Source: Azolla caroliniana (lineage: Eukaryota; Plantae; Polypodiophyta). Taken from it: DNA of 64,000 bases. Position 1 is the stretch's first letter. Each line of letters starts with the position of its first letter. Shown in pieces: positions 7,025 through 58,869 of the stretch. The stretch covers positions 17,856,001 through 17,920,000 of the forward strand of contig JBHGNT010000008.1 in assembly GCA_043228905.1 (NCBI GenBank). The letters run 5' to 3'. The position numbers and the translations under genes were made by a program. The notes beneath the pieces were generated by a model, which had not been told where the DNA came from, ran no database searches, and saw only the letters and a list, made by a program, of their open reading frames with translations.

Positions 7025-7096
7025 GAGGGCAAGTAAGGATTCAAACCTTGCACCTCCAAGTTAGGAGTCAATTGGCTTACCATTAAGCCATACTAT
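7025..7096 (-). other. tRNA-like A/B-box module in the LTR of element B (antisense)
   Basis: Reverse complement reads TGGCTTAATGG (A box)...GGTTTGAATCC (B box) at tRNA spacing. Confidence 0.7.
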
Positions 7097-7499
7097 TTAG
7101 TTGAAATTATATTTCTATCATTGTACTTTTATATGTAAATTCTCATACATGAGAGCTAAAATGAGTGACATGGTTATCATGCACCACATGTAATACATAA
7201 GCGCCAAATGGCAAACATGCAATTTATGCATGTCTTGTACCCTCACATGCATCATATGCATGAGAGCATCTATAAAAGAGGGAAGGGGGAGGAGAAAAGA
7301 CACAGTTTTTTTTATGAAAATTAAGAGGAAGAAATTCGTTATCAAATTGATCGTGTAATCTCAACTTCTCTCTTTCCCAATCTATCTTTAGTACTTTCTC
7401 GCCAAAGCTTGTATCGACTCTAAATCCTTCTAGTCCAGAACCCCGGCGGTTCCGCCTCACGATCTGCGCGTAGTGACGGATCTTCACGACATAATTAAG

Positions 7500-7517
7500 T
7501 GGTGAACCCGACGTGAA
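7500..7517 (+). promoter_or_regulatory. Primer-binding site complementary to the tRNA-Trp 3' end
   Basis: TGGTGAACCCGACGTGAA is the reverse complement of the plant tRNA-Trp end TTCACGTCGGGTTCACCA; 8 nt after the LTR. Confidence 0.85.
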
Positions 7518-7552
7518 AGAGGCAGTAGGAAGGATCAAGTCGAGATTAATAC

Positions 7553-16580: not shown

Positions 16581-17715
16581 TGTCATGAAGATTTTCGCCA
16601 ATGGTGTGAAAATTGCGAGGAATGTCCAAAATCCAGTGTGGTTCTTCACACAAGACATGAAACAATGATAGTGGAGATACTATTTTAAATAAGTTTAATA
16701 TCTTGGCACAAAAAGATGGAGGTCTTGAAGAGCTTTTCAATGCACTTTGCTACATAACAAACGGTCAACTAAGTGTGAAGTTATGTGGGTATGAAGTTGC
16801 GAAAAAAAGAAAAGAAAAACAAACCTGTGAGATGTCCCACACAGATAGGACAAACAAGGATCCTACAATATATAAAGCAAAGCCAAAAGCTATTATTTTG
16901 TGCCTATGTGTAAAGCTAGAGAGTTCAAGGTGACTTGAACTAAGTTAATCAAATGAATGGGTGTGGCCTAGCTACTTGCAAAGGTTTTGGCCAACCAAAA
17001 CCGGACCGACGGACAACATCCGACAGGCGGCGACGGAGCTGGATTTGGATGCGGCGATCGGCCGGTGACGGAACCGGCTAGGGATGCGGACCAAACGGGT
17101 GCAAATCGAACGGATCGGTTGATCGCGGTGCATGGTGTCTTAAAGATATTTGGTGTAATTACAAGACCAAAAGCCTAATAGTATTTTGTGCTTTTAAAAA
17201 GGATGTATGCAAGACTTGAACGTTGCACCTCCAAGTTGAGAATCTATAGGCTTACCATTAAGCCAAATCATTTCTTTAGGGATATGTTTTTTATCACTAT
17301 ACTTTTACATGTAATTCTCATACATGAGAGCTTAGATGATGACATGGCAAGCATGCATTCCGTGCATGTCTTGGACCCTCACATGCACCATATGCATAGA
17401 GGCATCTATAAAAGAATGGGGGAAGGTATTAATCAGGAAGAGCTTGGTACTTTATATCAAAATTAATATTAAAAAGAAAATTCGTTTATCGAATTGATGT
17501 ATTAATCTTGTTCTTCAAATCTAAAGTCAAGAGTTCAATCTTAATCTCTCTCTCAATCTAAAGTTAAGCATTTTATCTTATCTCAATCTCTCTCTTTCAA
17601 TCTATCTTAAATCCTTTCTCGCCAAAGCTAGTGCAAACTTTGAGTCCTTCCGGTCTAGAACCCCGACAGTTCCGCCTCACGATCCACACTTAGTGACGGA
17701 TTTTTTTTCACGACA
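16581..17715 (+). mobile_element. Solo LTR of the element B family, nested in the left LTR of D
   Basis: TGTCATGAAGAT...CACGACA, similar to 6529-7491; 4-bp TSD CCGT/TCGT; the D LTR resumes after it (compare 23355). Confidence 0.88.
17205..17268 (-). other. tRNA-like module in the B-family solo LTR
   Basis: Reverse complement TGGCTTAATGG...GTTCAAGTC; homologous to 7025-7096. Confidence 0.6.
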
Positions 17716-17917
17716 TCGTAATTGGTGTTGTTCACCTTGATTAGAATCAAGCTGCACCTGAGTATTTATACAAGAAGGTAGGGCTATGTAAGCCAACTAG
17801 AAATACAATATGCATGTAATGGAGGATGCATGCAATAGAGAATGCATGAGAATGTGTGCAACCTAGAAACTTCCAATGTTCAATCTATAGTACATGAAGT
17901 TAGATTTAGTACAAGGA

Positions 17918-17992
17918 TGTATAGGTAGCTCAATTGGTAGGGTTACCCAATAGAGACCATGAGATCTTGGGTTCAATCCTTACCTTCCTCCG
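17918..17992 (+). other. tRNA-like module in the D LTR (second copy at 23661-23735), antisense to the element
   Basis: TAGCTCAATTGGTAG (A box/D-loop, from 17926) and GGGTTCAATCC (B box, ~17969-17979). Confidence 0.75.
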
Positions 17993-19436
17993 TGACATGC
18001 ATATGTCTATGACATTATCCTCCCTCTAAGGCTGCCTCCTAACACCAACGACTGGTTTATGAGGGTATCGTTGATGAAAAGCGCGAATTGCCTCCGACGT
18101 ATTTTGTTGATGAAAAGCGCGAATTGCCTCCGACGTATTTTGTAAATGTGTAACTGGGAACGTATTTTGTAAATGTGTAACTGGTTCCCATGTGGTCCGA
18201 AAGAGGGTAACCTTTCCATAAGACCAAGTATTGAAGTCTTTGGCGACGCAAGCGGCGATCGAGGTTCTGGTCAACCTCGTACTTCGCACCTGTCGATAAT
18301 TCCACGGGTGGCGACAGAGGAAGTTTTCATCCTGGAATGCGAGATGGATGGTAGGGTTCGAGGAGAGAGGCATGGAAAACATTGTGAAGCCGAAATCTGG
18401 GGGGAAGCGTTAACGCGAAGGCGACAGGGTTGACATGCTCGAGGATATGGAAGGGGCCTAGCTTTTTGTAGTCGAGCTTCGCGCAAGGATGGGTGGTTGC
18501 GATGTGGCAACGGTAGCAGCCAAACATGTCACCGACTGTGAAGGTCGGAACGACCAAGCGATGTCTGTCATCGTGAGATTTATATTGTTTGCCAGAGGCA
18601 CGGAGCTCGAGGGAGACATCTTGTAAGGTGTGGGCACGCCTCTCGGCTGACGGATTGACGGAAGTCTATGGAATGAAAATGCTAAAACGAGGGTGGAAAC
18701 CACAGTTTGCGAAGAATGGGGAAACCTTAGTTGAGGCATAGATACTATTATTTTTGGAAAATTCCGCCATGGCAAGGAAGCCCACCCAATCATCTTGTTG
18801 GTAGCTGACTGTACACGGGAGGTATTGTTCGAGGATTTGGTTGACTCTTTCGGTTTGGCCATCAGTTTGAGGGTGGTGCGCGGTTGACAAGTTCACAGAA
18901 GTCCTGAATGTCTGTAGAAGTCGGCACCAAAAGTGGGAGATAAATTGAGGACCTCGATAAGAAGTGACATCCTCAAGGAAGTCGTGTAATCGGGCGACAT
19001 TTTTCAGAGAAAGGTGAGTTGTCTCCTTCCCTGAAAGGGTTTTTGCACATGGGACAAAGTGAGCCATCTTCAAAAACCGATCGACAACCACTAGCACCGT
19101 GTCATGGTCACCAACCCAAGGAAGGTCGGTGATAAAGTCCATGGAGAGAGATGCCCAAGGTCGACTGGGAATCGGAAGTGGGTGTAGAAGGCCATATGGA
19201 CGATGGTGAGCCGCTTTGGAGCGAGCACAAACGTCACAAGTTTTGATAAATTCTTTCACCAATTTCCATGGTTGGGGACACCAAAACCCCCAAGACAGCA
19301 ACGCCAGCGTTTTCGTGACCCCAAAATGTCCGACAAGAGGATCATCATGGCAAGTTTGTAGTACTCGGATGCGACATGTGCCAGCTAGTTTGTAAAGGAG
19401 GTGATTACTATAGAGTAGCCCATCCTGATTTGTAAA

Positions 19437-23326: not shown

Positions 23327-23510
23327 GGAAAAGAACAAGAACTTGACTTATAGAATCTGTAACTGGTGTTGTTCACCTTGATTAGAATCAAGGTGCACTT
23401 GAGTATTTATACAAGAAGGAAAAGAACAAGAACTTGACTTATAGAATCTGTAACTGGTGTTGTTTACCTTGATTAGAATCAAGGTGCACCTGAGTATTTA
23501 TACAAGAAGG
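23327..23510. repeat. ~92-bp tandem duplication in the D 5' LTR, covering TATA and the transcription start
   Basis: ggaaaagaacaagaacttgac...gagtatttatacaagaa present twice; single in the other LTR. Confidence 0.85.
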
Positions 23511-24511
23511 TAGGGCTATGTAAGCCAGCTAGAAATAGAGTATGCATGCGGATGCATGCAATGGAGAATGCATGAGGATGCATGCAATAGAGAATGCATG
23601 CAAGCTAGAAACTTCCAATGTTCAATCTATACTACATGAACTTGTTGGATTTGATACAAGGATGTATAGGTAGCTCAATTGATAGGGTTGCCCAATAGAG
23701 ACCATGAGGTCTTGGGTACAATCCCTACCTTCCTTCATGGCATATGTTTATGACATCAATAATACCATATAGTAGAAGTACCTAAATTTGAAAGGCTTGT
23801 CCACCTAGGCCTTGTACATTCCGGGAAAGAAAATGTACGGTGTTCATATTATATAGGATTTAGTGATGTCCTTTTCTTAAGAAGAGCCTCCGGATGGCCT
23901 TTCTAAGCTCTCTCTTGTCTTTTTAAAACCAAATAATTCCCTGCATACTTATGCACCCTATGTTCCTTAACCTACTTTTGGGTGGTTTGAATTGTCAAAG
24001 GATATTGTGAAGCTATAAATTGAAATCCAGCATAAGCGAGTTTATCTACACCCTTAACCATTTCAAAACCCATATTGTTTGGTTGACCAAAAACAGGTTT
24101 TCCTGAAAGATTATCGATAGGAATTGAATTACTAGAGACTTTAAACTGCTTGTTTGCTTCAATTCTCATGACAATTTGAGGCATTTCCACATCAATTGTA
24201 TGTTGAGTGGAAGCATCCTTTTCTTTTGATTTTTCAGAAAAAGCCACATTAACAGATGTAGACAACAGTTGATTCTCCACAATTTTCAAGGGTGGTTGGC
24301 CTACTACCAATCTCGGGAAGGACATGTCTGTCTTTTGTAAGGAAGAATCCAAGTTGAGCCTCTGTTGAGGAAGGTGGGATGATGAGTGGTCCAAAACATT
24401 CACCTCGTATGAACAGTCCTATTCTACATAGAGAGCAGATTGTTACTAAACACATGGTGAGGTTTGTTATGAGATACTTGTGAAGGTGTCTTCCTACACC
24501 CTATCATGATA

Positions 24512-24574
24512 TGGCAAAACTCGAACCCATGACCTTATGCTACATGGGTCGAGCTCTTGACCATTAGACCATAC
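24512..24574 (-). other. tRNA-like module at the U3 tip of E-family LTRs (also 28505-28567, 32396-32458, 58796-58859)
   Basis: TGGT(C/G)TAATGG...GGGTTCGAGT(C/T)TTGCCA, always antisense to the element. Confidence 0.72.
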
Positions 24575-27500
24575 ATTGTAATACATAAAATATTATTTTC
24601 ATTTATGTTGTATTATAGAAAATTGATGTATATTCCAGATTTCTCTGGAACATTCTAGAAACTTCAGAAGTATTCCTTAGAACACTATAAAAGGAGGCAC
24701 AAGGCATTATTTCGAACCAAATAGGTTCAACGCCAGTCTTAAGCCTCCTAGCTGCTATTGTACATTCTCTTCACATAATATATATCCTTTCTTATCATCA
24801 CTCTCTCTCTCGATCTCTCTCTCCCTCCCTCTCACTCACTCGTCCTTCTCTCGAGAGTTCTTCACCTCTCTTAGTACTAATACTTCTTTAGTAATAATTC
24901 CTTCTCTATCTTAGTACTGTACCTGACAGTTTGAACCGATTTTGGTCGATCTTCCTTCTGTATCTTCCGTTCCTCCTCTTCCTTTTATCTTCTTATTAAT
25001 CCTCTTATCCTCCCTAGTAAAATGGAAACTGTTAGCGCTCAGGAATACCAATCTGTTTTCTCGGAGCTCCAGTGCTTAAAAGAGAAATTTGTAGCACTAG
25101 AACAAGAAAATCATCATTTGTTGGGGGATCTTCAACAAATAGCACTGGAAAAACAACAACATGGGGAGCTGATGTTACGTGTACAACAACTCAAAACGAC
25201 TATCATATCATTACAACAACAAGGATCAAGCAATCAAGGGATTCACAAAGAACCCAAGATCAGTCTTCTTGCAAAATTTGATGTGACCCGATCATAGTTT
25301 AGAGGGTTTTTGAATCAGGTATGTTTAGTGATACAAATGTATCCTTCTCGATATCCCACTGATGCATCACGAGTGGAACTAGTAGGCACTCTCCTTAGTG
25401 GCTTAGCGTTAGCATGGTTTGCTCCATTGTTGGAAAAGGAATCTCCATTACTAAACAGTTTTGAAGAATTTATAAGTGAGTTTAAGGCCTGGTTTGGAGA
25501 TACTGACAGCATAAGGACTTCAATCAACAAAATCCGGTGATTATGCCAAGGTGATCGTCCAGCCTCTGCATACGCTGCAGATTTTTACCTCCTCGCTGCC
25601 GATATCCCTTGGGATGATCATGCATTGATGGAGCAATTCCGTTATGGTTTACGCAACGATGTTAAGGATTTACTCTTGACCTTCCCCGAAGAGCCAAAGT
25701 CATTAACAAAAGCAATTAGTCGTGCGGTGAGATACGACAACTGTCACTTTGAACAACGTTCGGAACAACAATTCCAGATTCCGAGGGCAGGATCAGAGCC
25801 TACCTACGCCTCAGTGGTAGCGAAACCTTTTTCGAGGGAGTCATATAATGTGCCTCCAGTAAGTACTCCTCCAATACATGTCTTAGCACTTCTAGATTCC
25901 GGAGCTAATTCTTGCTTCATGGATAGGAAATTTGCCCAAGCTCATCAGATATCTCTCAGAAAACTCCCGTGTCTTGCCTCTGTAGTAGTCATTGATGGTT
26001 GTCCCATTGCTTCCTGAAATATCATAGAAGAGTCAGAGCCCATTAATATTGTCCTAGATAATCTAGCATGTGTAGTATCATTTAATATAATTAGCATCCC
26101 AGAACACCCCATTGTCTTAGGATTACCATGGTTCGAATTACATAACCCAGACATAGATAGGCGGACAAGAGAAATCCGGCATCGAAAAGCCCGAGGGTCT
26201 ACTCATGAGATTGCAACGATTTCACTACATCAGTTGTGTGAGGAAGGACACAAGGAAGAAATGTTTCTCTTCGCAATATCAGTAAAACCCTCCAGCACCA
26301 CTAAAGAGGAATCCACCGTTCAACTTCCAGAGAAGTATCGTCATTATGTCGATCTATTTGATAAAGTACAAGCCAATACGCTTCCTCACCATCGACCATA
26401 TGATTGCCCCATCGATTTACAACCGGGGAAAGAGCCACCATGGGGACCGATCTACAATCTGTCACCAACTGAACTGGAAGTCCTTCGAGCCTATATAGAG
26501 GAGAATTTGGAGAATGGTTTCATACGACATTCGAAATCTCCAGCCGGCACACCCATTTTCTTCATCAAGAAAAAGGATGGCCCACTTCGTCTCATTGTAG
26601 ATTACCGTGGCTTGAATAAGGTTACAATCCGAAATAGGTATGCACTCCCCCTTATCTCAAGTCTTTTAGAACGAATCAATGGTGCCAGGTTCTTCACGAA
26701 GATCGACTTACGAGGAGCCTATAACCTCGTATGGATCTGACCAAGAGATGAATGGAAGACCGCGTTGCGCATCAGATATGGGCACTTCGAGTATACGGTC
26801 ATGCCGTTCGGCCTCACTAATGCGCCAACAGTCTTCCAGCACATGGCAAATGATATTTTCCGAGATCTCTGGGATGTGTGTCTAATCATCTATTTGGATG
26901 ACCTACTGGTTTACTCAAAGACCCAAGAAGAGCATGATTCTAATGTACTATTAGTACTAAAACGACTTCGAGAACATGGTCTGTATGCAAAGCTGGAAAA
27001 ATGTAGTTTCGGGTGCAACCAAGTGGAATTTCTCGGCTACATCATTTCGTCAGAAGGCATCTCCATGGACCCAGCTAAGGTCAAAACGGTGGTAGAATGG
27101 CAGACTCCACGTTCGGTGTGGGATGTGCAATGCTTTCTAGGCTTTGCCAATTTTTACCGGAAGTTTATAAAGAATTACTCAAAGCTCGTTTTGCCTCTTA
27201 CACAACTTACTAGGAAGGGACAATCGTTCATTTGGTCTGAAGAAGCGGACATGGCTTTTGAGAATCTTAAACATGCATTTACATCGGCTCTGATTCTAGC
27301 TCACGTTGATCCAGAAAAACCATTCATCATTGAAGCGGACACATCAGATTTTGCATTGGGGAGCATTGTATCACAACGGGGTAATGATGAAAAGCTACAT
27401 CCTGTGGCTTTTCACCCACGCAAGTTTGACGCCGCCGAAATCAACTACGAAATTCATGATAAAGAGCTACTGGCTATCGTGGACTCTTTTATGCAATGGA

Positions 27501-28160
27501 AGCATTTTCTAGAGGGATCTTCTCATCAAGTCATTGTCTTCAGTGACCACAAAAACCTCGCCTATTTTCAAGACGCTCGTGTGTTAAATCGACGTCAAGC
27601 TCGGTGGGCCCATTTTCTCACGTGTTTCGACTTCAAGATTACATATCGACCTGGGAAGTATCAAGGAAACGAAGATGCATTATCACGACATTCGTACCTA
27701 GCACCGCGTCCCGGCGAGCCAGCTTTTGATAACCAAAAGCAAGTAATCTTGGGACCGACACGAGTGCAAGCAACACAGGTCTTTGGCATGCGCATGGATT
27801 CCCACGTTATCAATATCATACGCGCGGACCTGAAGACAGATGCTTTCGCCCAAGCTATACTAGCACAAATTGATCCGTCTCGAGCGTCATGTTCACAGTC
27901 GCAACCACCAGGTACAGACTATCGGCAATTTAAATATCATGATGGGTTACTCTTCTTTAAAGAACTTTTGTATGTTCCTAATGGTTCTTGCTGCCTTCGA
28001 GTAGTACAAAACAATCATGACACATATACAGCTGGGCATTTTGGTAGTATTAAAACATTAGATTTAGTACAACGATCATTCTGGTGGCCCCGTATGCAAC
28101 AATTTGTCGAAGATTTTGTTCGAACTTGTGATACATGCTGCAGAGCGAAAATGCCAAGGT

Positions 28161-31100
28161 TGTCAGGAACAATACTAAGACAGAGATGGAATTAGTACTA
28201 AAAGAGGTGAAGAACTCTCGAGAGAAGGAAAGAGTGAGTGAGAGGGAGAGAGATCGAGAGAGAGAGAGAGAGTATGTGATGATAAGAAAAGATATATATT
28301 ATGTGAAGAGAATGTACAGTAATAGCTAGGAGGCTTAAGACTGGTGTTGAACCAATTTGGTTCGAAATAATGCCTTGTGCCTCCTTTTATAGTGTTCTCC
28401 GGAATACTCCTGAAGTTTCTAGAATGTTCCAGAGAAATCTGGAATATACATCAATTTTCTATAATAAAACATAAATAAAAAAATAATATTCTGTGTATTA
28501 CAATGTATGGTGTAATGGTCAAAAGCTCGACCCATGTAGCATAAGGTCATGGGTTCGAGTCTTGCCATATCATGACACTATCCCCCCTTTAAAACGACGA
28601 GTGTCACGAGTTGTTTTGGATTGAGGACCTGGTTTGTCTGGATATTGACGATAGAAGTCTTCAAGAAGAGCACGAGCATTAGTCACATTCTCTATCGGTT
28701 CCCAAGTTCGCTAGCTGGGACTATATCCTAGCCAATCGACTAGATAGTAGAGCTTGTTGCGAACAATCTTGGAATCAAGGACGACGGCAACCTCGTACTC
28801 ACGTCCATCTTCAAGCTCGATCGGGGGTGGAGGCTATGTAATGTGTTCTGGGATGGTGTTCTCTTGATAGGGTTCGAGGAGAGAACTATGAAACACTAGA
28901 TGTATCCGAAGTTGCGGAGGTAGATCGAGACAAAAAGCGACATCATTAATCTTTCCAATAATACGGAAAGGACCTAATCGCCGATAATCCAACTTCTCGC
29001 ATGTCTTGATGTGTCGTCGTAGTAGCCATACCCGATCTCCAATGCTAAAACTGGATGGAAGTCGATGATGATCCACGTAAACCTTATGTGTCTATTGAGC
29101 TTGTTGGAGATGAGTAGATAAATCGGCTTGTATCTTGCGTAACCGCACTAAACAATCCTCTGTGCAAGGATTGGTGGACAACTGTGGAGTTTCGAATACA
29201 CACCACCGGGGGTGAGAACCCATATAAGCATAAAATGGCGTAACTTTAGTCGATGCGTGGACAGAGTTATTGTAGGCAAATTTGGCGAAGTGGAGAATAT
29301 CTACTCAATCATCCTGATGATAGCTTAGAAAGCACCAAAGATACTACTCCAGTGTTTGATTTGTTCGTTCTGTTTGGACATCCGTTTGTGGGTGGTAGTT
29401 GGAGGAGAGGTTACACGTGACCTTGAGCATTTTAAAAGTGTGCTTCCGGAATTTCGATACGAACTGGGGTCCATAGTCGCTGATGATACTATCGGGAAGG
29501 CCATGATGCCGATATACTTCACGCATGACAATTTCAGTGGTTTCTTCACTGGATATTTCCTTAGTACATGGCAAGAAATGAGCCATCTTCGTATATCGAT
29601 CTACGACTGTTAGAATCGCATTGAACCCCTTAGAGACTGGAAGATCTGTGATGAAGTCTAGAGAAATGGATTGCCATGGCTTGCTTGGAATTGGTAATGA
29701 TTCTAATAAACCATATGGATGATGCCTTGGCATTTTCGCTCTGCAGCATGTATCACAAATCCGAACAAAATCCTCAACAAATTGTCACATACGGGGCCAC
29801 CAAAATGATCGTTGTACTAAATCTAATGTTTTAGTACTACCCAAATGCCTAGCTGTATATGTGTCATGACAGTTTTAGACTACTTGAAGGTGGCAAGAAC
29901 CATTAGGAACATACAAGAGTTCATTAAAGAATAGTAATCCATCATGGTATTTGAATTGCCGATAGTCCGTACCTGGTGGTTGCGACTGTGAACAAGATGC
30001 TCGAGAGGGATCAATTTGTGCTAGAATGGCTTGGGCAAAAGCATCGGTCTTCAAGTCCTCACATATAGTATCGATAACATGGGAATCCATTGGCATGCCA
30101 AAGACCTATGTTGCGGGCAGTCATGTCGGTCCCAAGATCTCTTGCTTTTAGTTATCAAAAGTTGGCTCGCCGGGACGCGGTGCTAGGTACAAATGCCGTG
30201 ATAATGCATCTACCTTCCCTTGGAGCTTCCCCGGATGATATGTAATTTTGAAGTCGATACGTGTGAGGAAGTGGGCCCACCGAGCTTGACGTCGATTTAA
30301 CACACGAGCGTCCTGAAAGTAGGCAAGGTTTTTGTGGTCACCGAATACGATGACTTGATGAGAGGATCCCTCTAGAAAATGTCTCCATTGCGTAAAAGAG
30401 TCCACTATTGCCAATAGCTCCTTATCATGAATTTCGTAGTTGATTTCCGCGGCGTCAAACTTGCGTGAGTGAAAAGCCACATGATGTAGCTTCTCATCAT
30501 TACCCCGTTGTGACAGAATGCTCCCCAATGCGAAATCTGATGCGTCTGCTTCGATAATGAATGGTTTTTCCAAATCGACATGAGCTAGAATTGGAGCCGA
30601 TGTAAATGCCTTTTAAGACTCTCGAAAGCTATGTCTGCTTCTTTAGACCAAATGAACGATTGTCCCTTCCTGGTAAGTTGTGTGAGAGGAAGAACGAGCT
30701 TTGAGAAATCTTGTATGAACTTTTGGTAAAAATTGGCAAAGCCTAAAAAGCATTGCACATCTCGCACCGAACGCGGAGTCTGCCACTCTACCACAGTTTT
30801 GACCTTAGTTGGGTCCATGGAGATGCCTTCCGAGGAAATGACATAGCCCAGAAATTCCACCTGGTTGCACCCAAAACTACATTTTTCCAGCTTTGCTTAA
30901 AGACCATGTTCTCGAGGTCGTTTTAGTATTAACAATACATGAGAATCATGCTCTTCTTGGGTCTTCGAATAAACCAGTAGATCATCCAAATAGATGATCA
31001 AACAAACATGCAAGAGATCTCAGAATATATCATTTGCCATGTGTTGGAAGACTGTTGGCGCATTAGTGAGGCCGAACGGCATGATTGTATACTCGAAGTG

Positions 31101-32468
31101 TCAATATCTAGTGTGAAACGCGGTCTTCCATTCATCTCCTGGTCGGATCTGTACGAGGTTATAGGCTCCCGTAAGTCGATCTTCGTGAAGAACCTGGCAC
31201 CATTGATCCGTTCTAAAAGACTTGAGATAAGGGGAACTGCATACCTATTTCTGATTGTCACCTTATTCAAGCCACGGTAATCTACAACGAGACGAAGTGA
31301 TCCATCCTTTTTCTTAACGAAGAAAATGGGTGCGCCGGCTGGAGAGTTCGAATGCCGAATGAAACCATTTTCCAAATTCTCCTCTATATAGGCTCGCAGG
31401 ACTTCTAGCTTGGTTGGTGACAAATTGTAGATCGGTCCCCATGGTGGCTCTTTCCCCGGTTGTAAATCGATGGGGCAATCATACAGTCGATGGTGAGGAA
31501 GCGTATTGGCTTGTACTTTATCGAACACATCGGCATAATGATGATACTTCTTTGGAAGTTGAACGGTGGACTCCTCTTTAATGGTGTTTGAGGGCTTTAT
31601 TGATATTGCGAAGAGAAACATTTCTTCCTTGCGTCGTTCTTCCCGCAACTGATGTAGCGAAATGGTTGCAATCTCATGAGTAGACCCTCAGGCTTTTCGA
31701 TACCGGATTTCTCTTGTTCTCCAATCTATGTCTGGATTATGTAATTCGAACCATGGTAATCCTAAAATAATGGGGTGTTCTGGGATGCTAATTATATTAA
31801 ATGATACTACACATGCTAGATTATCTAGGACAATATTAACAGGCTCTGACTCTTCTATGATATTTCCGGAAGCAATGGGACGACCATCAATGACTACTAC
31901 AGAGGCTAGACACGGGAGTTTTCTGAGTGATATTTGATGAGCTTGGGCAAAGTTCCTAACCATGAAGCAAGAATTAGCTCCGGAATCTAGAAGTGCTAAG
32001 ACATGTATTGGAGGGGTACTTTTAGTACTAAAACGATTTCGAGAACATGGTCTTTATGCAAAGCTGGAAAAATGTAGTTTTGGGTGCAACTAGGTGGAAT
32101 GTCATCACTCTCTCTCTCTCTCTCAATCTCTCTCCCTCTCACTCACTCTTTCCTTCTCTCGAGAGTTCTTCACCTTTCTTAGTACTAATACTTGTTTTAG
32201 TACTTATTCCTTCTCTGTCTTAGTACTATTCCTGACTGTTTGAACCGATTTGGTTCGAAACGATGCTTTGTGCCTCCTTTTATAGTGTTCTCAGGAATAC
32301 TCCTGAAGTTTCTAGAATGTTCTAGAGAAATTTGGAATATACATCAATTTTCTATAATAAAATATAAATGAAAATAATATTCTACGTATTACAATGTATG
32401 GTGTAATGGTCAAGAGCTTCACCCATGTAGCATAAGGTCATGGGTTCGAGTCTTGCCATATCATGACA
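28161..32468 (-). mobile_element. Tcn1-like Gypsy element E2, inserted in the opposite orientation into sibling E1
   Basis: 3' LTR 28161-28577 plus PPT; chromodomain YYLVDWLGY at ~28700-28800; INT, RH, RT, PR; rearranged 5' LTR; TSD AAGGT/AAGGC. Confidence 0.9.
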
Positions 32469-33417
32469 AAGGCATCATCCATATGGTTTATTAGAACCAT
32501 TACCATTACCAATTCCAAGCAAGTTGTGGCAATCCATTGTTGTAGACTTCATCACAGATCTTCCAGTCTCTAAGGGGTTCAATGCGATTCTAACAGTGGT
32601 AGATTGATATATCATGACACACCCCACCTTAGTCCAACCATTAGATCTATCCTCAGACGGCATTATAGTTGTGATAGGGACCTGCTGATCGGTATCTTTA
32701 GTCATTTTTGGACACTTTTTACCCAAATGTCCAAATCCAAAACAACAAAAACATTGATATGGTAAGCTCCTATACACAATTTTCTACGAAAAAGATTCCT
32801 GCCTTGGATCAAGTAAATTGGGCAACAATATATTTGAGGGCAGAGTTGCGGATTTAGAAATCAAAAGTTTTGCAGATGCAGCTCCCATTGACTTTTCTTC
32901 GATCTAATGGGGGTGGGGCTTATCATAAGCTTCCAAGACCGTACAGATGGAGCTCCCATTGACTTTTCTTCGATCTGATGGGGGGGCTTATCATAAGCTT
33001 CCAAGACCGTACCAATATTACCAGTAAGTAGATGCACGAAAGGCATCCATTCTTTATGCAAATTGGGAAACATCATTGTACATGTATGATATAATCTAAA
33101 CCATCAAGTACTTGATTTGCGGAGAAGTTGTGTATCCATTTATGGAAAAAGACCCATCCTCCCTTGACTGCCAAAACTTTCTTCTCTAGCAAGATCAACA
33201 CTATTCGTTCCGGCTTGAACTCCACCTCATACTAATTTTGTCCAAGCATTTGTACATATGTGATGTTATCAATCTCTTGTTTCAATTCCGCTTGCAACAA
33301 TAAACGAAGGTTAGCGGGTTGAGGATGAATGCCCCAAACATGTGCAATGGCAATCCTCTTCTCTATACGTAGTATCTCTCTTACGACCTGTGTTCGATCC
33401 TGTTCTGTTGGGGCTTG

Positions 33418-39630: not shown

Positions 39631-39920
39631 GTGTAGTGGTAGTAGTACAAGTGCTTCGCCTTCCGACACAACATTTAGGGTTTTTGCAAACACTTGTTAC
39701 CATATGTACTTTGTTTGTTCCCAACACAGACACAGAGAGAGAACATACATAATGAATGATTTGACCATTTATAACGGAAGATTACGAAGTGATTAATGTG
39801 AGCACAATATATATATATTATTAAATCGAATTCATTCCAGCGGACAGATACATAGCTACATAGGTCGATGGTATAAAGATGATGAGGGTTATTTGCTATA
39901 CTATACTAGAGTACAGGTAT

Positions 39921-40658
39921 TCAAGCTGCGGTAGCCTTCTTCACGCTGGCGGTGAGGGCATCCACTTCGGACTGGCCGATGCCGAACGTATTCTGAAGCA
40001 CGGTGCCGGGCAGTGGTGGGTTGGCAGCAAAGAGGGCCACAGCAAGCTGAGACACCCCTGGATTCTGGCTGTTCAGGGCCGCGATGGCCAGCGCGCGATT
40101 CTTCTTGTCGGGGTTGATCTGAAAGTGGACGAGGCCGCGGGGGAAGACGAAGAGATCGCCTGCATACAACGTGGCCTGGAAGAGGGTGTTGTTGGGGGCG
40201 GTGGAGACAAAACCCACGGTGAGCGTGCCCTGCACCAGATAGAGCACCTCAGTAGCACGCGGGTGAACATGGGGTGGGTTTAGACCACCGTTGGGCGGGA
40301 AGTCGATGCGAGCGATGGACAGGCCCAGAGTGTTGAGACCGGCGAAGTTGGCTACAGACGCAAGGGTAACATTGGCCGCCTTACTGCCATTAGTATAAGA
40401 GGAATCATAAGTGGATGGTGAGGCTGCTCGCAGCAGTGTGGATGTGAAGTCCTGGGCTGTGACTTTGTCGGCTGGCTTGCAGGTGCGGCCATTGATGGTG
40501 ATGGGTGCAGCTGTATTGGCATCGGCCACGCAGAAATCTTGGAGCGGGTCCTCGTCCGCTGCGCCGACAAGCTGTCCAGGAGCTGTGATACATAAAGCGA
40601 CAACAAGGCTGAGGAGGATTAGCAATATAGTAGAAGAGGAGGCCAGGGAAGAAGCCAT
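39921..40658 (-). CDS. Germin-like protein (cupin_1), secreted, intronless
   Basis: Signal peptide; DPLQDFCVAD; GLNPPHVHPRATEV; GDLFVFPRGLVHFQ; upstream TATA at ~40803-40813. Confidence 0.95.
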   Translation of the reverse strand: MASSLASSSTILLILLSLVVALCITAPGQLVGAADEDPLQDFCVADANTAAPITINGRTCKPADKVTAQDFTSTLLRAASPSTYDSSYTNGSKAANVTLASVANFAGLNTLGLSIARIDFPPNGGLNPPHVHPRATEVLYLVQGTLTVGFVSTAPNNTLFQATLYAGDLFVFPRGLVHFQINPDKKNRALAIAALNSQNPGVSQLAVALFAANPPLPGTVLQNTFGIGQSEVDALTASVKKATAA

Positions 40659-41689
40659 GTCTAAGAAAAGGAATAATAGGAGGAGTGTGGTAACTGTTAT
40701 TATATGCTATATGCTCTAGGCTGTGCGATATTCGATTGCAGAGTTTGTGTGATTAGAGAGAGAGTAGGTATATTGTTTTGGATAGAGCTCCTGCATTTGC
40801 ATTTATTATATATAGACAGAGACAGACACTGCCGTGTATGTAGTCCGTAGACCAACGGCCACGCGCTGTTGATTTTTGGCTAAAGGATGGGGATGTACCA
40901 AACGTCGCGAGATGATGAAGAAAAAGTAAAAGCAATCGCGAAGGAAAAAGTAAAAGGAAGAAGTCGACATCTTCTCTCTTTTTTCTTCATGACGTCATTT
41001 TCTGACTCTTGCCTTGCTTCCAGATTAATACCGTAGAGTTTCTAGTATGTATGTATCCGAGAGAGGGGAGGGGGTGACCACTTGACCACCATAAACACGT
41101 TGATACTACCCAAAACTCTACACGTCATTGGTTTTGAAATCTTATTATCCCGCCAAACAAGTTCTATTGCATCAACGATCACACCCCACATGTAAGACAA
41201 GAGAAACTCTCATCAATTATTTTCTTCCATGTGTAGTTGCAATTATCGATGTGTGCGTTACAATGCTTTGGAGCACAAAGTATATTCTCATATGGCGTCC
41301 TATACATGCACAAATTGTCATATGTGTATTGTGTGTTGCAAGCTTATGATGATAGCTTGTTAAACGACACATGCCTGATTGATTAACACTCAATTAATAA
41401 CCATTCACCTCTACCCATGTGCTCGTTGTCAATGATGATTATAATCCTTTTGAGAAGAATGGAGTTGCTTGAAGATACATATATGGAATGTCTCAAGTCG
41501 TTTCGCCCCAACCCCTATGGAACTGTTCGTCTCTCTATATTTAGCTTTAGAGATTCTTGCAACTCGTTTACATAAATCAACTCGTCTCTTTTGCGTTTAC
41601 ATTGAAATTTGTAAAATATTTGTTTGGAAAAGTTTCATAGATGCTTCCTCATTGATACCACTATGGCCATGTGGTTGAATTAATGCTAC

Positions 41690-46310: not shown

Positions 46311-48565
46311 GCTATGGAGATGAAAACTTGTTTTACCTTTGTTTTTGGCCTCCTTGTTGGCCATCATTACTTCGTATGCGCTAGCTCCGACTCTCATCTC
46401 TTCGCCGCCACCTTCCATATCTCCGGTCTTATGTTGGCTCTCAGGCACAACTGTCGAAGTCTCAGAAACAATTGTGGGGAGAACCTTGGCACCATCGATC
46501 ACCATCTTCTAATTCATAGCCATCTTTCCGTCAACGTTGTTATTCACATTGGCTTCAATCTTTGCTTCCCCACCACTTTCCGTCTCTTGGGTCTCATGTT
46601 GCCTCTCAGACACAACTGCCCAAGTCTCTAGATCAAGTGTTGGGAAAGTCTCGACACGACCATCCGCCATCGACTCGTCCATAGCCATCTTTGTCTTGAT
46701 GTCGTTTCTCGTGGCTACCTCCTCAATTACGTCGACCTCACACTCTTTATCTCCCTCGATCACGCAAGCTTTGCTCACGCTTGCCCCTTCATCACTTGAT
46801 ATTTCGGACACAATGTGTGTTCCGAAATGCTTGTCCACTCTTAGAGTGGCATTTCCCGCTCTCGAGTCTTCGGCCTTATCCTTGACCCTTGTTTCTCTGC
46901 AATATGAGAAGGTGACTTGTTTTGCACCTTTTCTCTTGGTATTGTCATAAAAAACTTGAGCCTTTGTATCGGCCACTTCATTAACCCATATTTGTTGGGA
47001 GGTTTCTTTTTCCTCGATCATTGTTCTCCTCGGTTTTCACTCCATTTTTAGCTCCTCTTCAGCATCACCTTGCACCTTTAAGTTCTTGAATGCTTCTCTC
47101 ATTAAGGCTTCTATGTTAAGTATCGAATCTTCCCTCTCTGAGTTTTCTTCCTTCGGTGGTGGTGTATTGCATCCCGTTCTCCTTTGAACATCCTTCATGG
47201 GTCCTGTTGTTGTCGATGAGAATCTCGTCTTCCTCTCGTCGTGTTGTCGGCATACCCTTTCCACTTTGGCCCAATCCTTGATGAGACCATTTGTACCATT
47301 GTTATCCTTGAGTTGGATTCCAATGGCCTTCCTTTCATTCCGATTGATTGACTTTACAAATAGTAGAACTTTATTCACCCCTACCAATCTTCGATCCCGC
47401 TCTGAGAGTTGAGCAAAGCGACACTCAAACTCAACGAACGCATCCATGGCACTCCAGTGGGTCCTCATCAATGACACCCATTGGTCAAACTTGTACAAAC
47501 TTTGTCCCTTCGGTCTCTTGTAGCCATATGCCTCCAATAGAGCCTCCTTGAAAGTCACCCACGAATCATGAACTTCTTGAAGCTCTTTTACCTCTTTGTA
47601 ATTCAGTTCAGCCACCACCCAAAAAAAGTACTCCAGCCTCATAGCTTCTTTTACACCTCTCGAATCCATGTCCACGTTGTAGGTGTCTAGAAAATTTTGG
47701 ACTATGCCCCCGTCGAAATAGCCGACTCGCTCGACCACGTTTTCGACGGCTTGTTGGGCCGCATCTCGTCTTTTACCTTCTCTTGAAAATTCCATCGTCA
47801 TCTTCAACATTGCCTTCATGAGATATTCCTCATCCATCTTCATCCTCCACTACTGCTCTTCACATCGGGTTCACCAAAAGATGTCGTGAGGATGCGCGTG
47901 CATGCATGCTTCGCTTGAGTGGGACCACCAGGATCTCGGATCGGAGAGGACGTTCGCGAACTTGTCAAAAAGATTTGACGACGTGGATAGGAGTCGAGGA
48001 AACCAATGTCACATTTTCAAAAGATCGAAAGATTGACAATTATAAGAAGTATAATAATATTGATCGACAGTAAAAGAAGAAGAAAAATAAGAAGGTTATT
48101 TATAAGAAGAATTTTATATTGATGGTGATATCAGATATTGAGCCCCCCCCTTTACACAAGCCGTACTAGGGGTTTTATAGGTTTGTCCATGCACAAAACC
48201 CTGGACTTGGAGCTATGGTTTCTGTGCACACAATTTTGCTTTGTGACATGCAGAAAACCATGGGCTTAAAACAATGGTTTTGTGTACACGGTTTTGTACG
48301 TTTGTTTCCTATGGAATACTGAATATGAGAAAGAAATATAGAAAATATAAAGCACTTAGTAGTAGCTTTAGTGGTAAGGTAATTGCCTCTTATCTTAGAG
48401 GTGCAAGGTTCAAATCCTACTTGCAGCCCTCTACATGCACTCAATGCCATTGTGACCTAGGTTTATTTATTACTGATTTATTTTCATTTTTACAAGTATT
48501 CGTGAAATGTGTGTGGATCCTCAATTTTTGACTTTTTCTCGCACTAGACATGCCACATCACAACA
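46310..48565 (-). mobile_element. Trp-primed Gypsy element G: 5' LTR 47882-48565, PBS 47859-47876, gag 47037-47843; truncated
   Basis: TGTTGTGA...TCACGACA termini; PBS TGGTGAACCCGATGTGAA; gag similar to B; flank CCGT. Confidence 0.82.
48355..48425 (+). other. tRNA-like module in the G LTR (antisense)
   Basis: TAGCTTTAGTGGTAAG...GGTTCAAATCC. Confidence 0.72.
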
Positions 48566-51231: not shown

Positions 51232-51289
<58 letters not shown>

Positions 51290-52454: not shown

Positions 52455-52735
52455 CCCTACCTTTAGAAAGCCTTAGTACGAAAGTCACACACATCCTTCA
52501 CTCTACAACAACTAGCAGTTTCCCATATACAAAACATTAAAATAAAGGTAGATCAGGATCTATGCCACAAAATAAATGGTATGATGAGGATTGTAAGGAT
52601 TTACATAGACAACTTATAGCATCACAACTCAATGGTAGTATTACCTCAATACAATCTCGCAAAGAAATGCGTAAGATGACATGTCGTAAGAGATGAGTGT
52701 GGCAGGCATCCATATATTGGGAACTCTACCATATG
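52455..52735 (+). mobile_element. Short LINE ORF2 fragment (inter-domain region)
   Basis: PQNKWYDEDCKDLHRQL resembles the W(F/Y)DxxC linker motif of APE-RT LINEs. Confidence 0.55.
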
Positions 52736-53595: not shown

Positions 53596-53960
53596 CTTCT
53601 TCTTCGGTCGATTTGGTTTCTTGTCCGTATCCGGCTGGTTCGTCGAGTGTCAGTCGGTTACCAGCTAACATCCGGTTTTCAACCGGGTTAGTCCTTGTGT
53701 CCTCAAGCCGGTCTTCATTGGATGATCCGGAGTTCATCACCTTCGTCTCCGACTCCTAGTCGGCAATGGTCTTGTCTTCCATGAAGACTATGTCTCGGCT
53801 CCGGAACACCTTCTTGTCGACCAGATCACACACCCGGTAACCGAACTCATCATCGTCGTATCCAAGGAATATGCATGGCCTGGACTTCGGATCTAGCTTT
53901 GCTCTCTTATCCTTTGCAACATGCACGTAGGCGAGACAACCGAACACCTTTAGATGCCGG

Positions 53961-56535
53961 TGTTGGCCGGCAAGACCAAATGGCCAATTAGAGTCCAGAA
54001 TTTGAAAGGGGTATTAATTAAGGATAGGGAGTTGTTATAGATAAATATTATGTTATTTTGAGAAGCGGTGTTGTGAAGGATTTGCTTCACAATATAAACA
54101 TAAATTTAAATATTGTATTTAGTAATATTTCAAACACTTAAACCCACAACCTTATAAACCAAGCAAAATGTATATACCACTAAGCTAGGCTATTTGTTTT
54201 TAGAAATGTTCTCAAGAATGTGCTTCACTATATAAGAATAAACCTAAATATTGTATTAAGCAAAATTGAGGGACTTAAACCCTCAACCTTGTATACCAAG
54301 CACAAAGCATACACCACTAAGCTAGGTTACTTATTTTAAAGTTTTATGTTCATCATTATAGTTATCCCATATATATTTTCATACATGGGAGCTAGATGAG
54401 CATGATGGCTATCATGCCATGCATGTTATGCACCCACACATTATCATTTGCATGAGAACAACTATATAAAGAGGATCAAGGGAAAACAGGGGAATCAATC
54501 AATAAAGAGAAAGTTAGAAATGAAATAAACAAGTTAGCTTGTTGGTGAAGAGGCTCGGGTTTCCAAGTTTGAGTCAAGGGTTCAAATAAAGAGTCGGTAG
54601 AGAAAGGGTTCATCTTGTTATAAGGCATTGTAATGTTGGTAAAAACTTGTTCTCTTCATGTTCATATCTTATAGTCTTTCTTCTTAAATCATACATTCTC
54701 TCTATCTTTTATCTATGCTCATCTCTCCCACACACATTACTTTAAACTCTTATTCTTCTTATCCTTAATCTTCCTAACATTTGTGCTCAAAGGCTTATAA
54801 AATTTTCGTCAACTCCTTTTAACCTTAGTCCCTGCGACTTCGCCACACAAACCACAACTACCCCGACACATTTGGTGAACCTGACATGAAGGCGGCATGA
54901 AGGAAAAATGGAGGAGCAAATGAGGCTTATGTGTAAGATAATGGAACGAATGATGCGAGAGCAAGGGATGATGGCAAGCATCGACAAAGCCGTCGACAAT
55001 ATTCTGGCACGAGCAGGAATCTTCGAAGGTATAAATTTAACAAGATTTCTGAAGATTTACAGTGAAGAAATGCTTAAACGTGGTGTCGACGAAGCTGCCA
55101 AAATTAATAGCTTTAGTCGAGTCTCTATGATTGGGCTACAACAAAGAATCGAGGAGCTATAGATGGAGCATCAAACGTGGGCGACTTTCGAAAGAGCATT
55201 ACTCAATGAATAAAAGCTCAATGATATGTCAAGGATGACAAGGCAAGTTTTCATGGATTGGGTAGAGTCTGACAAACATTTATGTGTTTTTGAAGTGTTA
55301 AAAGAGTTTTCAGAAAGATTTGAGCAATTAAATGTTAGGGATAGAAACATAATAATGCCAGATAAAATAATATTGTTTCTACAAGCTACTAATATTAAAG
55401 ACAGGAAAGACTTAGGAATGCTTCTAGAAGATCAAAATAGTCCAAATCGACTTACTGAAGACTGGGAGGAGGTGAAAAGGGCTTGCGTCCATTTTTGTAA
55501 AAGAAAGTTACGGTTTATGGAGCTGCCAGAGAGGAAGGGAGACGAAATGGGAAACGTCTCGGGAGAGAAGAAAATACAAGATTCACTCTTGCATGAGTTG
55601 GTGAAAGGCATGAAAGACTTGTCCATCAAAGTGACGAAGCTAGAATCAGGACAAAGCTCAACTTCGTCAAGGTAATGAGGTGGAATGGTTCGAAGGTGTA
55701 TGTGGTGTGACAGTATCGACCATCAAAAGAAAGATTGTCAAGAACATAGGGATGCTCTTAATCATGATAAAATCTATTATCCAGATGGTAAGATTCACTC
55801 GACAGAGACTCAACAACCACTTCAACTCAACTTCGGGCGAGGTGGAATGAAAAAGCTAATGGAAGATGTCGAGAGAGAAACAACGCAAGCGATACAATCC
55901 GTCATAACGTTAGGGTTGCGTGTAAAAGACTCATATGGTGGATCTGGCTTTTGGCAAGATGTGATGGATTATGCAAGAAAAGGGAAGGTTCAAGTGGATG
56001 AATTAAAAAGAGCAGGAGATGAAATATTGAATTTCACTAGATGGAATGATCCAGTGGACACACTCTCAGCATTCGCCCAAGTGAATGCACAAGAGGTACT
56101 AGTGGAAGAGAAGCGAAAGAGAGCTGAGGAGGCTGATCCGGCAAAGAAACATGAGACACGAGAACAAAAGAGAAGGGATATGGAAAAGGTTGCTCCTAAG
56201 ATAAAGGAAGCTGATAGAGTAAAAGGGAAGACAGTTCCATCTTTAAAGCTTGCTTCAGACATAGAAACAACGATGGATATAAAAAATGTACTAGAAAGAA
56301 GAATATTAAATAGTAAGGTAGAATTTACTTTCAGAGAAGTGTTGGGTATAGCAAAGAAAGAATTTCATGAAGTTATCATAGATATTATTAGAAGAAAGAG
56401 ACAAGTGACAGAGGAAGTTACGGGAGGGTGTGCAACAACACTTTGAGATTTGTATGGTAGTACCATTAACACTGAAAGTGTAAAAATCAGAAATGATGTT
56501 GGGGTTCATGAAGAGGATAGGAGTCACTATACAAG
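53961..56535 (+). mobile_element. Trp-primed Gypsy element F: 5' LTR 53961-54868, PBS 54873-54890, gag 54908-56530; truncated
   Basis: TGTTGG...CCGACA; TGGTGAACCTGACATGAA; CMWCDSIDHQKKDC knuckle; left flank CCGG. Confidence 0.82.
54082..54340 (-). other. Tandem pair (~139-bp unit) of tRNA-like modules in the F LTR
   Basis: Copy 54266-54330 reverse complement: TAGCTTAGTGG, arm TTGTG-CTTGGTA-TACAA, T-arm GAGGG-TTTAAGT-CCCTC. Confidence 0.75.
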
Positions 56536-58869
56536 TCCTCGTAAGTCGATCTTTGTGAAGAACCTGGCACCATTGATCCGTTCTAAAAGACTTGAGATAA
56601 GGGGAAGTGCGTACCTATTCCTAATGATGACCTTATTCAAGCCATAGTAATCTACGACGAGACGAAGTGATCCATCCTTTTTCTTGACGAAGAAAATGGG
56701 TGCGCCGGCTGGAGATTTTGAATGTCGAATGAAACCATTTGCCAAATTCTCCTCTATATAGGATCGAAGGACTTCTAGCTCAGTTGGTGCCAAATTGTAG
56801 ATCGGTCCCGTCAGTGGCTCTTTTCCCGGTTGTAAATCGATGGGGCAATCATATGGTCAATGGTGAGGAAACGTATTGGCTAGAACTTTATCAAACACAT
56901 CGGCATAATGATGATACTTCTCTGGAAGTTGAACGGTGGACTCCTCTTTAGTGGTGTTGGAGATTTTTATTGATACTGCGAAGAGAAACATTTCTTCCTT
57001 GTGTCCCTCCTCACGCAACTGATGTAGCGAAATGGTTACAATCTTATGAGTAGATCCTCGGGTTTGTCGATATCGAATTTCTCTTGTTCTCCAATTTGTG
57101 TCTAGGTTATGTAATTCAAGCCATGGTAATCCCGAAACAATGGAATGTTATGGGATACTAATTATATTAAAGGATACTACACACGCTAAATTATCTAGGA
57201 CAATATTAATGGGCTCTAACTCTTCTATGATATTTCCGGAAGCAAGGGGATGACCATCAATGACTACTACAAAGGCTGGACATGGGAGTTTCCTTAGGGA
57301 TATCTGATGAGCTTGGGCAAAATTCCAATCCATGAAGTAAGAATTAACTCCGGAATCTAGCACTGCTGAGACATGTACTGGAGAGGTACTTTTAGTACTA
57401 ACGATTACTTGGGCTAAGAACACATTGCTAACTTGCTTAGAAGGAATGGAACCACTAATGGGCTGCACAGATCTAGGGTTGTCCAACCAAACGGCTCCTA
57501 TTTTGGCTGGACTTAGTCGTTTAACTCTTCTTCTAACTAACTAAGGACATCAAATTTGTTCAATAGATTTGGGTTATTAGTACTATTAGGACTATGAGAT
57601 ATTCCTACTGAAATAGACTCAGGTTTAGTACAACTAGAACTAGCAACTATTGGGTTCACCTGTCTTCTTGGCCTATGGGGACATTTCACTGCAATATGCC
57701 CTGGTCCACCGCAATAAAGACATAGTCGATTTGTTCGGCGTCGCTACTTTTCTTCTTCCGATAATGGTCTGCGACGACGTGTAGTGTCAATTTCCATCCC
57801 AGTTGGAGTATTCAGTGGAGACACATTATATGACTCCCTTGGAAAAGGTTTTGCTACGACTGAGGCGTAGGTGCGCTGTGATCTTGTCCTTGGCATCTGG
57901 AACTGACGTTCTGAACGTCGTTCGAAAAGACAGTTGTCGCATCTCATCGCGCGACTGATTGCTTCTGTCAATGACTTTGGTTCTTCGGGGAAGGTCAAGA
58001 GTAATCGGTGGGATATTGGGAAGGATGCATTTGAATGACTAATCATACCTAATTAAGGAATCCTCTAAACTGTGATCGCGTTCCATCGAATTTCATGGGA
58101 AGGCTGATCTTGGGTTCTTTATGAACCCCTTGCGTACTAAATCCTTGTTGTTGCATTGCTACTATGGTTGCTTCGAGTTGTTGCACGTGTAACGCTAGTT
58201 CCCCGTGTTGTTGTTGCGTCTGTTGCTTCTCTAAGGAGATTTGTTGAAGCTCCCCCAACAATCATTGATTTTCTTGTTCCAATGCGAGAAACTTCTCTTT
58301 CAAGCATTGCAACTCTGAAAAAATGGATTTATATTCTTGAGCGCTAACAGTGGCCATAGTATGAGAGAAAAGAGGAATAAGATATTGTATGAAGGGAGGG
58401 AGAAGTAAGAAGATAAAGGAAGAGAAGGAAGGAGTCTGAAATCGGTTCAAACTGTCAGGAGCAGTACTAAGACAAAGAAGGAATTAGTACTAAAAAGTAC
58501 TAAGGGAGGTGTAGAACTCTCGAGAGAAGGAAAGAGTGAGTGACTGAGAGAGAGAGAGTGAGAGAGAATGATGATAAATATATATATATATATTATGTTA
58601 AGAGATTATACAATAGTAGCTAGGAGGCTTAAGACTGATGTTGAACCAATTTGGTTCGAAATAATGCCTCATGCCTCCTTTTATAGTGTTCTCAAGAGTA
58701 CTCTTGAAGTTTCTATAATGTTCCAAAGAAATCTGGAATATACATCAATTTTTTATAGTAAAACTTAAATGAAAATAATATCCTTCGTATTACAACATAT
58801 AGTCTAATGGTCAAGACCTCGACCCATGTAACATAAGGTCATGGGTTCGAGTCTTGCCATATCATGACA
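56535..58869 (-). mobile_element. Tcn1-like element E4: 5' LTR 58453-58869, gag, PR, RT start; 3' half lost
   Basis: Same LTR and ORFs as E1/E2; self-priming site at 58439-58450. Confidence 0.88.

Follow-up and report, generated by a model that had tools for sequence, protein, structure and literature searches.

The DNA analyzed here is a 64,000-nucleotide stretch of the Azolla caroliniana (Polypodiophyta) genome, covering positions 17,856,001 to 17,920,000 of contig JBHGNT010000008.1 and called the window below. It holds long terminal repeat (LTR) retrotransposons of several families, and in five of these (B, D, E, F and G) the U3 region of the LTR carries a short module whose A box and B box have the spacing of a tRNA-type RNA polymerase III (Pol III) promoter. 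An earlier note on this DNA had listed 11 such copies, and both boxes are present at all 11 coordinates. The LTRs and their modules are as follows; the strand is that of the element for an LTR and that of the tRNA sense for a module.

6529-7491 (+): B1 LTR, TGTCGTGAAGAT...ATCTTCACGACA; TATA box 7272-7278, primer-binding site (PBS) TGGTGAACCCGACGTGAA at 7500-7517
7025-7096 (-): B1 module, in mid-U3, with the TATA box 175 nt downstream
16581-17716 (+): B2 LTR, cut by the D insertion, with about 70% identity to B1 in the 5' part; TATA box near 17407
17205-17268 (-): B2 module, with a T5 run directly after it in the tRNA sense
17717-18014 (-): D 3' LTR; polypurine tract (PPT) AGAGGGAGGATAA at 18015-18027 (-)
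17918-17992 (+): D1 module, about 25-95 nt into the LTR
23449-23755 (-): D 5' LTR; TATA box at LTR position 255
23661-23735 (+): D2 module, B box mutated to GGTACAA
24503-24928 (+): E1 5' LTR; TATA box at about 24686-24692, gag ATG at 25023, terminus common to E2, E3 and E4
24512-24574 (-): E1 module, LTR nt 10-72
28161-28577 (-): E2, a complete 3' LTR whose partner 5' LTR is E3; PPT AAAGGGGGGATAG at 28578-28590 (-)
28505-28567 (+): E2 module
32240-32469 (-): E3 5' LTR, preserved over its first ~230 nt, after which ~900 nt are missing through an internal deletion
32396-32458 (+): E3 module
47882-48565 (-): G LTR; TATA box 48172-48178, PBS 47861-47876 (-)
48355-48425 (+): G module
54069-54870 (+): F LTR; TATA box at about 54463, PBS TGGTGAACCTGACATGAA at 54873-54890
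54130-54190 (-): F1 module, the upstream copy of a ~136-nt tandem duplication
54266-54330 (-): F2 module, the sole copy with a recognizable cloverleaf
58453-58869 (-): E4 LTR of a minus-strand E element
58796-58859 (+): E4 module

The carriers are protein-coding elements: gag, protease, reverse transcriptase, RNase H and integrase were found for E, protease, reverse transcriptase and integrase for D, and gag for B, F and G. The B1, F and G LTRs measure ~680-960 nt, have TGTYGTGA...TCACGACA-type termini and a full TGGTGAACC-type PBS, and hold the module in mid-U3. The E LTR is only ~425 nt long, a corrected size, and its end at 24928 coincides with the exact stop of the E2 alignment. All four E copies begin with TGTCATGATA, directly followed by the module, and the TATA box stands at LTR position 184, so that the module takes up about one third of a very short U3 (~185-210 nt). 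D is a minus-strand element whose LTR starts with TGTCATAGAC, with the module ~25 nt in. Several other peculiarities were seen in D: the last ~40 nt of its LTR, TATA box included, recur ~35 nt downstream of the 5' LTR (23405-23449, minus strand), a perfect 8-bp hairpin (CCTTGATT..AATCAAGG) lies at the LTR end, and the U3 contains tandem repeats of the CATTCTC-ATTGCATGCATCC type.

Module orientation was judged against coding strands assigned with Pfam and tblastn. The tRNA sense runs opposite to the coding strand in E1 (element on the plus strand), in E2, E3 and E4 (minus), in D (minus), in B1 and F (plus) and in G (minus); the orientation of B2 was deduced from the homology of its LTR with that of B1. 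Likewise, a strong TATA box follows every module in the element sense, at 111-114 nt in E, 133 nt in F2, 139 nt in B2, 148-159 nt in D, 175 nt in B1 and 176 nt in G. The earlier note's description of the modules as antisense sequences in U3, upstream of the LTR TATA box, is therefore borne out.

The two boxes are not a chance resemblance. Read by eye, an A-box-like T-R-G-Y-N-N-A-N-N-G-G and a B-box-like G-G-T-T/A-Y-R-A occur at 11 of 11 sites. A strict paired pattern (T-R-G-Y-N-N-A-N-N-G-G, a gap of 25-45 nt, then G-G-T-W-Y-R-A) matched eight times on the two strands of the window, compared with a mean of 0.15 and a maximum of 2 in 100 dinucleotide-preserving shuffles. In the copies matched by both regular expressions (B1, F1, F2, D2 and E1-E4), 43-44 nt separate the A-box T8 from the B-box G52, and the distance from A14 to G52 is 37-38 nt in all intact copies of every module type; for B2 and for a foreign relative, L002, the latter was measured by alignment since the regular expression mis-hit there. 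A profile built from the 11 copies recovered exactly those 11 in the 64-kb window, with scores of, for example, 54.7 bits for E1 and 48.1 bits for D1. It found no significant module in the Copia LTRs or in those of A and C, as the earlier note had stated, and no significant copy in the sense orientation; the sole extra match, on the sense strand at 54526-54586, was insignificant (E 0.066). Nor did the profile find a free-standing module outside LTRs, whether in the window itself or across fetched loci totaling ~60 kb.

Functional tRNA genes are ruled out. ARAGORN at its standard setting and Rfam at its gathering threshold (29 bits for RF00005) found no tRNA in the window, and pairing in the stems is at the level of shuffled sequence: across eight B, G and F copies the canonical cloverleaf is 55.4% paired, compared with 55.0% after shuffling and 50-61% when the stems are slid by 1-2 columns. 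RNAalifold likewise gave no conserved structure (-0.83 kcal/mol). The F2 module retains the clearest trace of a tRNA. In permissive Rfam searches of short slices it had the best RF00005 score (22.1 bits, E 0.04; B2 followed with 14.8 bits) and aligned over the D, anticodon and T arms, and ARAGORN lowered to an 80% threshold called it tRNA-Pro (tgg). In contrast, permissive Rfam searches of ~1-kb slices gave no tRNA match at E<=10 for D1, D2 or E1. Although the three arms of F2 speak for a tRNA gene or a tRNA-like RNA structure, these results, with the eight paired matches against 0.15 expected by chance, leave functional tRNA genes, tRNA-like structures and accidental similarity taken together with a negligible share of the probability.

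The modules belong to the LTR families rather than to single copies. They are present in both D LTRs, in all four E LTRs and in the paired 5' and 3' LTRs E3 and E2, and the D and E3/E2 pairs imply that the module is older than those insertions. Foreign contigs, numbered with the prefix L, were collected by LTR or protein homology and not by the boxes. For G, gag relatives were found only on short ENA contigs. The LTRs of L001-L004 align to the G LTR at 66-76%, and L001, L002 and L004 keep the module at the homologous position. When B1 is compared with these G-like LTRs, similarity is confined to the 5' terminus of the LTR, to the module (78-84%) and to the end of the LTR together with the PBS. 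The LTR of L012 is 78% identical to that of D and keeps a D-type module (44 bits). Contigs from four related species span the F and E LTRs, modules included, and E4 represents an LTR of very high copy number in those species; contigs that diverge upstream of 58818, representing E subfamilies, hold variants that still conform to the A box, such as TAGCTTAATGG and TAGCATAACGG. The earlier note's view that these are modules of LTR families and not copy-specific insertions thus stands, and we conclude with high confidence that the module is a heritable, tRNA-derived cassette of these LTR families. Its ancestry in a tRNA or the head of a short interspersed nuclear element (SINE), its place and orientation within the LTR, the loss of its fold and its better conservation than its flanks can be read directly from the sequences.

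Several further observations were made on the relatives. On L012, a B/F-type module fragment (72-123, plus strand; 15.5 bits) adjoins the D-like element, and therefore both carrier lineages co-occur in that source. L009 contains a D relative (3765-3900) with the same PPT and TGTCATAGAC start and, ~75 nt in, a barely recognizable antisense B-box-like stretch, perhaps a fifth type of module or perhaps one in an advanced state of decay. In the four related species, word depth over the first ~270 nt of the E LTR (58598-58900; U3, module, TATA box and the beginning of R) is 4-8 times that over the LTR remainder; either additional families or fragments share the 5' part, or the CT-rich 3' part changes too fast to be covered. 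Repeats of these elements also occur in leaf and plant metagenomes.

The number of times such a cassette was acquired is probably smaller than the number of families. Between module and TATA box, the sequences of B1, B2 and F run collinearly, which makes their modules positional orthologues, and B, G and F, which share a DUF4100-type gag, are one lineage with one positionally orthologous module. Between module types, the boxes are 0.50-0.82 identical and the inter-box sequence 0.22-0.47 (0.82 and 0.31, respectively, for B1 and F2), and cross-type profile searches match other types only at E 0.25-4, so a common origin of the four module types is neither shown nor excluded. In a pol tree, for which breaks between the pol pieces of D and of E3 were bridged with X, E1 and E3 group with P0032, P0029 and L005 (96/98), the module-less L007 is their sister (92/90) and D falls far outside. 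At least two module gains or U3 exchanges within the chromoviruses would be the more parsimonious account, because a single ancestral module would require several losses. Overall, there were perhaps ~3-4 independent events. The five Gypsy families of the earlier note overstate the independence of the carriers: B, G and F have a single module in common, and the pol of these three is absent from the window. Its proposal of repeated acquisition is favored for the chromoviruses by the tree and the module-less L007, L011 and L013, and does not extend to divisions within B/G/F.

The assignment of the carriers to self-priming chromoviruses on the one hand and tryptophan-primed non-chromoviruses on the other holds only in part. 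No chromodomain was found in the degenerate D and E copies of the window; E has an SH3_Tf2-1 domain, and the relatives L005, L007, L011 and L013 have Chromo domains, so that D and E would be chromoviruses by kinship. Downstream of the gag of B, F and G, neither the window nor L002 and L003 yielded a pol, and the label of Gypsy non-chromovirus is putative for these three. Self-priming is suggestive in E and was not seen in D: the 21 nt after the E LTR (24929-24949) are complementary to 24711-24731, just downstream of the TATA box, and this duplex scored -24.9, which is marginal relative to the shuffle minimum of -24.8, whereas D was negative. These features suggest Tf1-type self-priming in E. 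As a separate observation, the nearest named relatives of the DUF4100 gag (55685-56446, plus strand) and of the E pol (26765-28195, plus strand) are fungal (Basidiomycota, Mucoromycota, Ascomycota) or animal and not plant; both lineages are poorly represented among annotated plant genomes.

A U3 sequence antisense to the D and T arms of a tRNA recalls the yeast element Ty3, whose PBS is bipartite, with U3 sequence complementary to the T and D arms of tRNA-iMet (PMC5371799). By analogy, the U3 RNA of these elements could pair with the D and T arms of the primer tRNA and bridge the 5' and 3' ends of the genomic RNA. The antisense orientation and U3 location are what such a model requires, and D and E are related to the Ty3/Tf1 group. 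However, the modules do not match the elements' own primers. The PBS of B, F and G is a full 16-18 nt, unlike the short 5' segment of Ty3, and the T stem inferred from it is of the CACG type, whereas the modules have CAAGG/CCTTA (B1) and GAGGG/CCCTC (F2). The F2 anticodon called by ARAGORN is TGG, of the proline type, as opposed to the tRNA-Trp that the earlier note and we read from the PBS as the putative primer of B, F and G. D and E show no tRNA-type PBS after the LTR, and E looks self-priming. A Ty3-like bipartite PBS is thus largely refuted by PBS length, T-stem mismatch and the missing tRNA PBS of D and E, and we regard it as very improbable.

In a comparison of six B and G sequences, of which homology searches had supplied four, the modules are 0.75-0.79 identical and the 60-nt flanks 0.53. 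When F is added, the boxes reach 0.80 and 0.74, the inter-box sequence 0.59 and the flanks 0.47. None of 53 columns between the boxes contains a gap, compared with 16 of 126 in the flanks (p=0.0035). Against the B-box consensus GGTTCGANNCC, E is good (GGTTCGAGTC), and D1 and G are near-consensus with GGTTCAA.

The explanation that we prefer runs as follows. A tRNA or the head of a tRNA-derived SINE supplied a Pol III promoter cassette of type 2, its two boxes at fixed spacing, that entered the U3 of an ancestral LTR and has since been copied along with it. The cloverleaf was lost while the boxes and their indel-free spacing were kept, a pattern that marks the surface recognized by TFIIIC rather than an RNA fold. 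Action at the level of DNA is proposed because the boxes and their exact spacing persist and the fold does not: the cassette would serve as a U3 cis-element for TFIIIC and possibly Pol III. Since the unit faces outward, any Pol III transcription would run away from the RNA polymerase II (Pol II) promoter 110-180 nt downstream, which would give a reason for the antisense orientation. TFIIIC binding, Pol III transcription and a barrier or enhancer effect are all putative properties here, and the barrier idea proposed in the earlier note is compatible with what is conserved. We regard this explanation as a whole as a tentative one that falls somewhat short of even odds, and selective maintenance of the module as a Pol III or TFIIIC element as, if anything, slightly more doubtful. 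The strongest form of the idea is unlikely, namely that unrelated autonomous LTR lineages repeatedly captured and selectively kept an outward-facing TFIIIC/Pol III cassette as an insulator that shields the Pol II promoter from heterochromatin, or as a nucleosome organizer.

A number of results weigh against selective maintenance. The cassette is dispensable in some relatives: L003 has lost the B-box half of the module, L005 holds the module in decayed form, and decayed or missing modules are also found in L009, L011 and L013. Together with L007 and L008, L011 and L013 have no module despite the same PPT|TGT... junction. In E, the contrast between module (0.75-0.78) and flanks (0.69) is slight, and the AT-rich, indel-prone flanks inflate the conservation contrast in general. 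C56 of the B box is normally invariant; it is lost in B1, F1, F2 and L001, and T54 is lost in D2. The B boxes form a series of GGTTCGA (E), GGTTCAA (G, D1), GGTTTGA (B1) and GGTTTAA (F, L001), with GGTACAA in D2, and the succession of CG, CA, TG and TA at positions 56-57 (for example at 7039-7049, 54141-54151 and 48402-48412) is what CpG decay produces, a pattern that suggests cytosine methylation of the cassettes in at least some lineages. A Pol III terminator is not general, with T4 or longer runs close by only in B2 and F2 and elsewhere at a background-like median of 132 nt; TATA-like and CAA motifs upstream of the modules are present and uninformative in an AT-rich U3. Finally, because only ~3-4 independent events may be involved, a uniformly antisense orientation is not statistically meaningful from this window.

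Much of this evidence would be expected if the module were a neutral passenger, derived from a tRNA retrocopy or SINE that long ago inserted into U3 in a small number of founder LTRs and has hitch-hiked since. Its antisense orientation could then reflect a filter, in that the tail or terminators of a SINE in the sense orientation would disturb 3'-end formation of the genomic RNA in U3-R, and its apparent conservation could be that of a more complex sequence among AT-rich, indel-prone flanks. CpG decay of the B boxes and the mutated B box of D2, the losses among relatives, the weak contrast in E and the non-significant orientation bias are all in line with such a passenger. T-rich tracts follow the G-like, B2 and F2 modules in the tRNA sense, those after the G-like modules resembling a SINE tail, and SINE insertion into LTRs has been proposed as a module origin elsewhere (PMC10886601). 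On the other hand, B and F boxes are 0.82 identical across an inter-box sequence that, at 0.31, is below the flanks and still exact in length; the diverged E subfamilies keep A-box-conforming variants; and the module is one of just three islands of similarity between B1 and the G-like LTRs. In D and E, no SINE body, tail or target-site duplication is recognizable around a module that lies 10-25 nt from the LTR edge, and free-standing copies are lacking from the window and the ~60 kb of fetched loci. Weighing both sides, we consider a passenger with an orientation filter nearly as likely as maintenance through TFIIIC.

The module may also have been exapted as a cis-element of the Pol II promoter itself, acting through ordinary transcription factors or nucleosome positioning, with TFIIIC and Pol III playing no part. 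The TATA box lies at a constant 111-176 nt from the module, approximately one nucleosome, the module fills a third of the E U3, and in B and G the whole module is conserved and not the boxes alone. However, this gives no reason for the A and B boxes in particular, along with their spacing, to have persisted in four otherwise unrelated module types, and no Pol II factor motif was identified. We therefore hold such an exaptation to be improbable, although less so than a bipartite PBS.

Among known systems, the paired-box module has several partial parallels, the closest being the Helenus and Cassandra elements. Helenus (TRIMp3), described by Kojima in 2024, comprises TRIMs (terminal-repeat retrotransposons in miniature) whose LTRs contain tRNA-derived sequence that encodes no working tRNA and in which conservation is mainly that of the A and B boxes, and multiple origins through SINE insertion into LTRs have been proposed for it (PMC10886601). 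The same paper remarks in passing that 'not a few' Repbase LTRs contain tRNA-like parts; Helenus is non-coding, measures 311-1263 bp and has Selaginella as its only plant report (PMC10886601). The elements of the window resemble Helenus in having tRNA-derived sequence inside an LTR, along with a PBS and PPT. Unlike Helenus, they encode gag or pol and are not short non-coding TRIMs, and whereas the Helenus module is regarded as a Pol III promoter that serves its own element, the one here is antisense, cannot transcribe the element and has a TATA box downstream. Cassandra and Ajax are also non-autonomous TRIMs, with a type-1 Pol III promoter derived from 5S rRNA in the LTR as their own promoter. 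The heads of SINE2 elements share with our modules a degenerate tRNA in which the A and B boxes and their spacing are kept and the cloverleaf is lost, and T-rich tracts after some copies. In contrast to SINE2 elements, these modules spread inside LTRs, have no recognizable body of the long interspersed nuclear element type, tail or target-site duplication, and have no free copies in the available sequence. Lastly, tRNA genes (tDNAs), extra-TFIIIC (ETC) sites and SINE B2 act as chromatin barriers, these being host loci or dispersed SINEs in yeasts and mammals. The likeness to such barriers lies in the hypothesized action only, a TFIIIC-bound B box beside a Pol II promoter, and we know of no TFIIIC-barrier data in plants.

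The window also contains two intact germin-like genes (Cupin_1), at 39921-40658 and 62369-63100 on the minus strand, with the germin box included and barley oxalate oxidase as the best PDB match (E 4e-45). They lie in a segmental duplication (39676-41482 versus 62106-64000, ~86% identical) and are the only clear host genes in the window. Together with the occurrence of the repeats in leaf and plant metagenomes, they mark the host as a plant, despite the mostly fungal affinities of the gag and pol; a search of the open reading frames for an SBP/SPL fragment found none. A GC-rich block at 2000-6000 (56-61% GC) contains 185-nt tandem-like repeats at 3955-4932 and long open reading frames on both strands with no Pfam match, and ~200-nt direct repeats flank it at 1891-2092 and 5694-5895.

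In summary, the paired-box module is a real, reproducible and lineage-spanning feature that is unusual for protein-coding elements, and its function is putative. To our knowledge, small-RNA genes have contributed promoter modules to the LTRs of tiny non-autonomous elements only (Cassandra, Helenus and Ajax), in which the module drives the element; here, very abundant protein-coding elements hold such a module in antisense orientation within the region of their Pol II promoter, where that role is closed to it. Our literature search, which was incomplete and leaves novelty unproven, found no description of such cassettes in autonomous elements. Even if the module is a passenger, it carries a practical warning, since annotation pipelines will draw false calls of tRNA pseudogenes and SINEs from these LTRs. 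If TFIIIC does bind it, potential TFIIIC sites would be spread across the genome by these families in the tens of thousands, and it would become testable whether plants use B boxes as chromatin boundaries in the way that yeasts and mammals do, and whether transposons exploit this.

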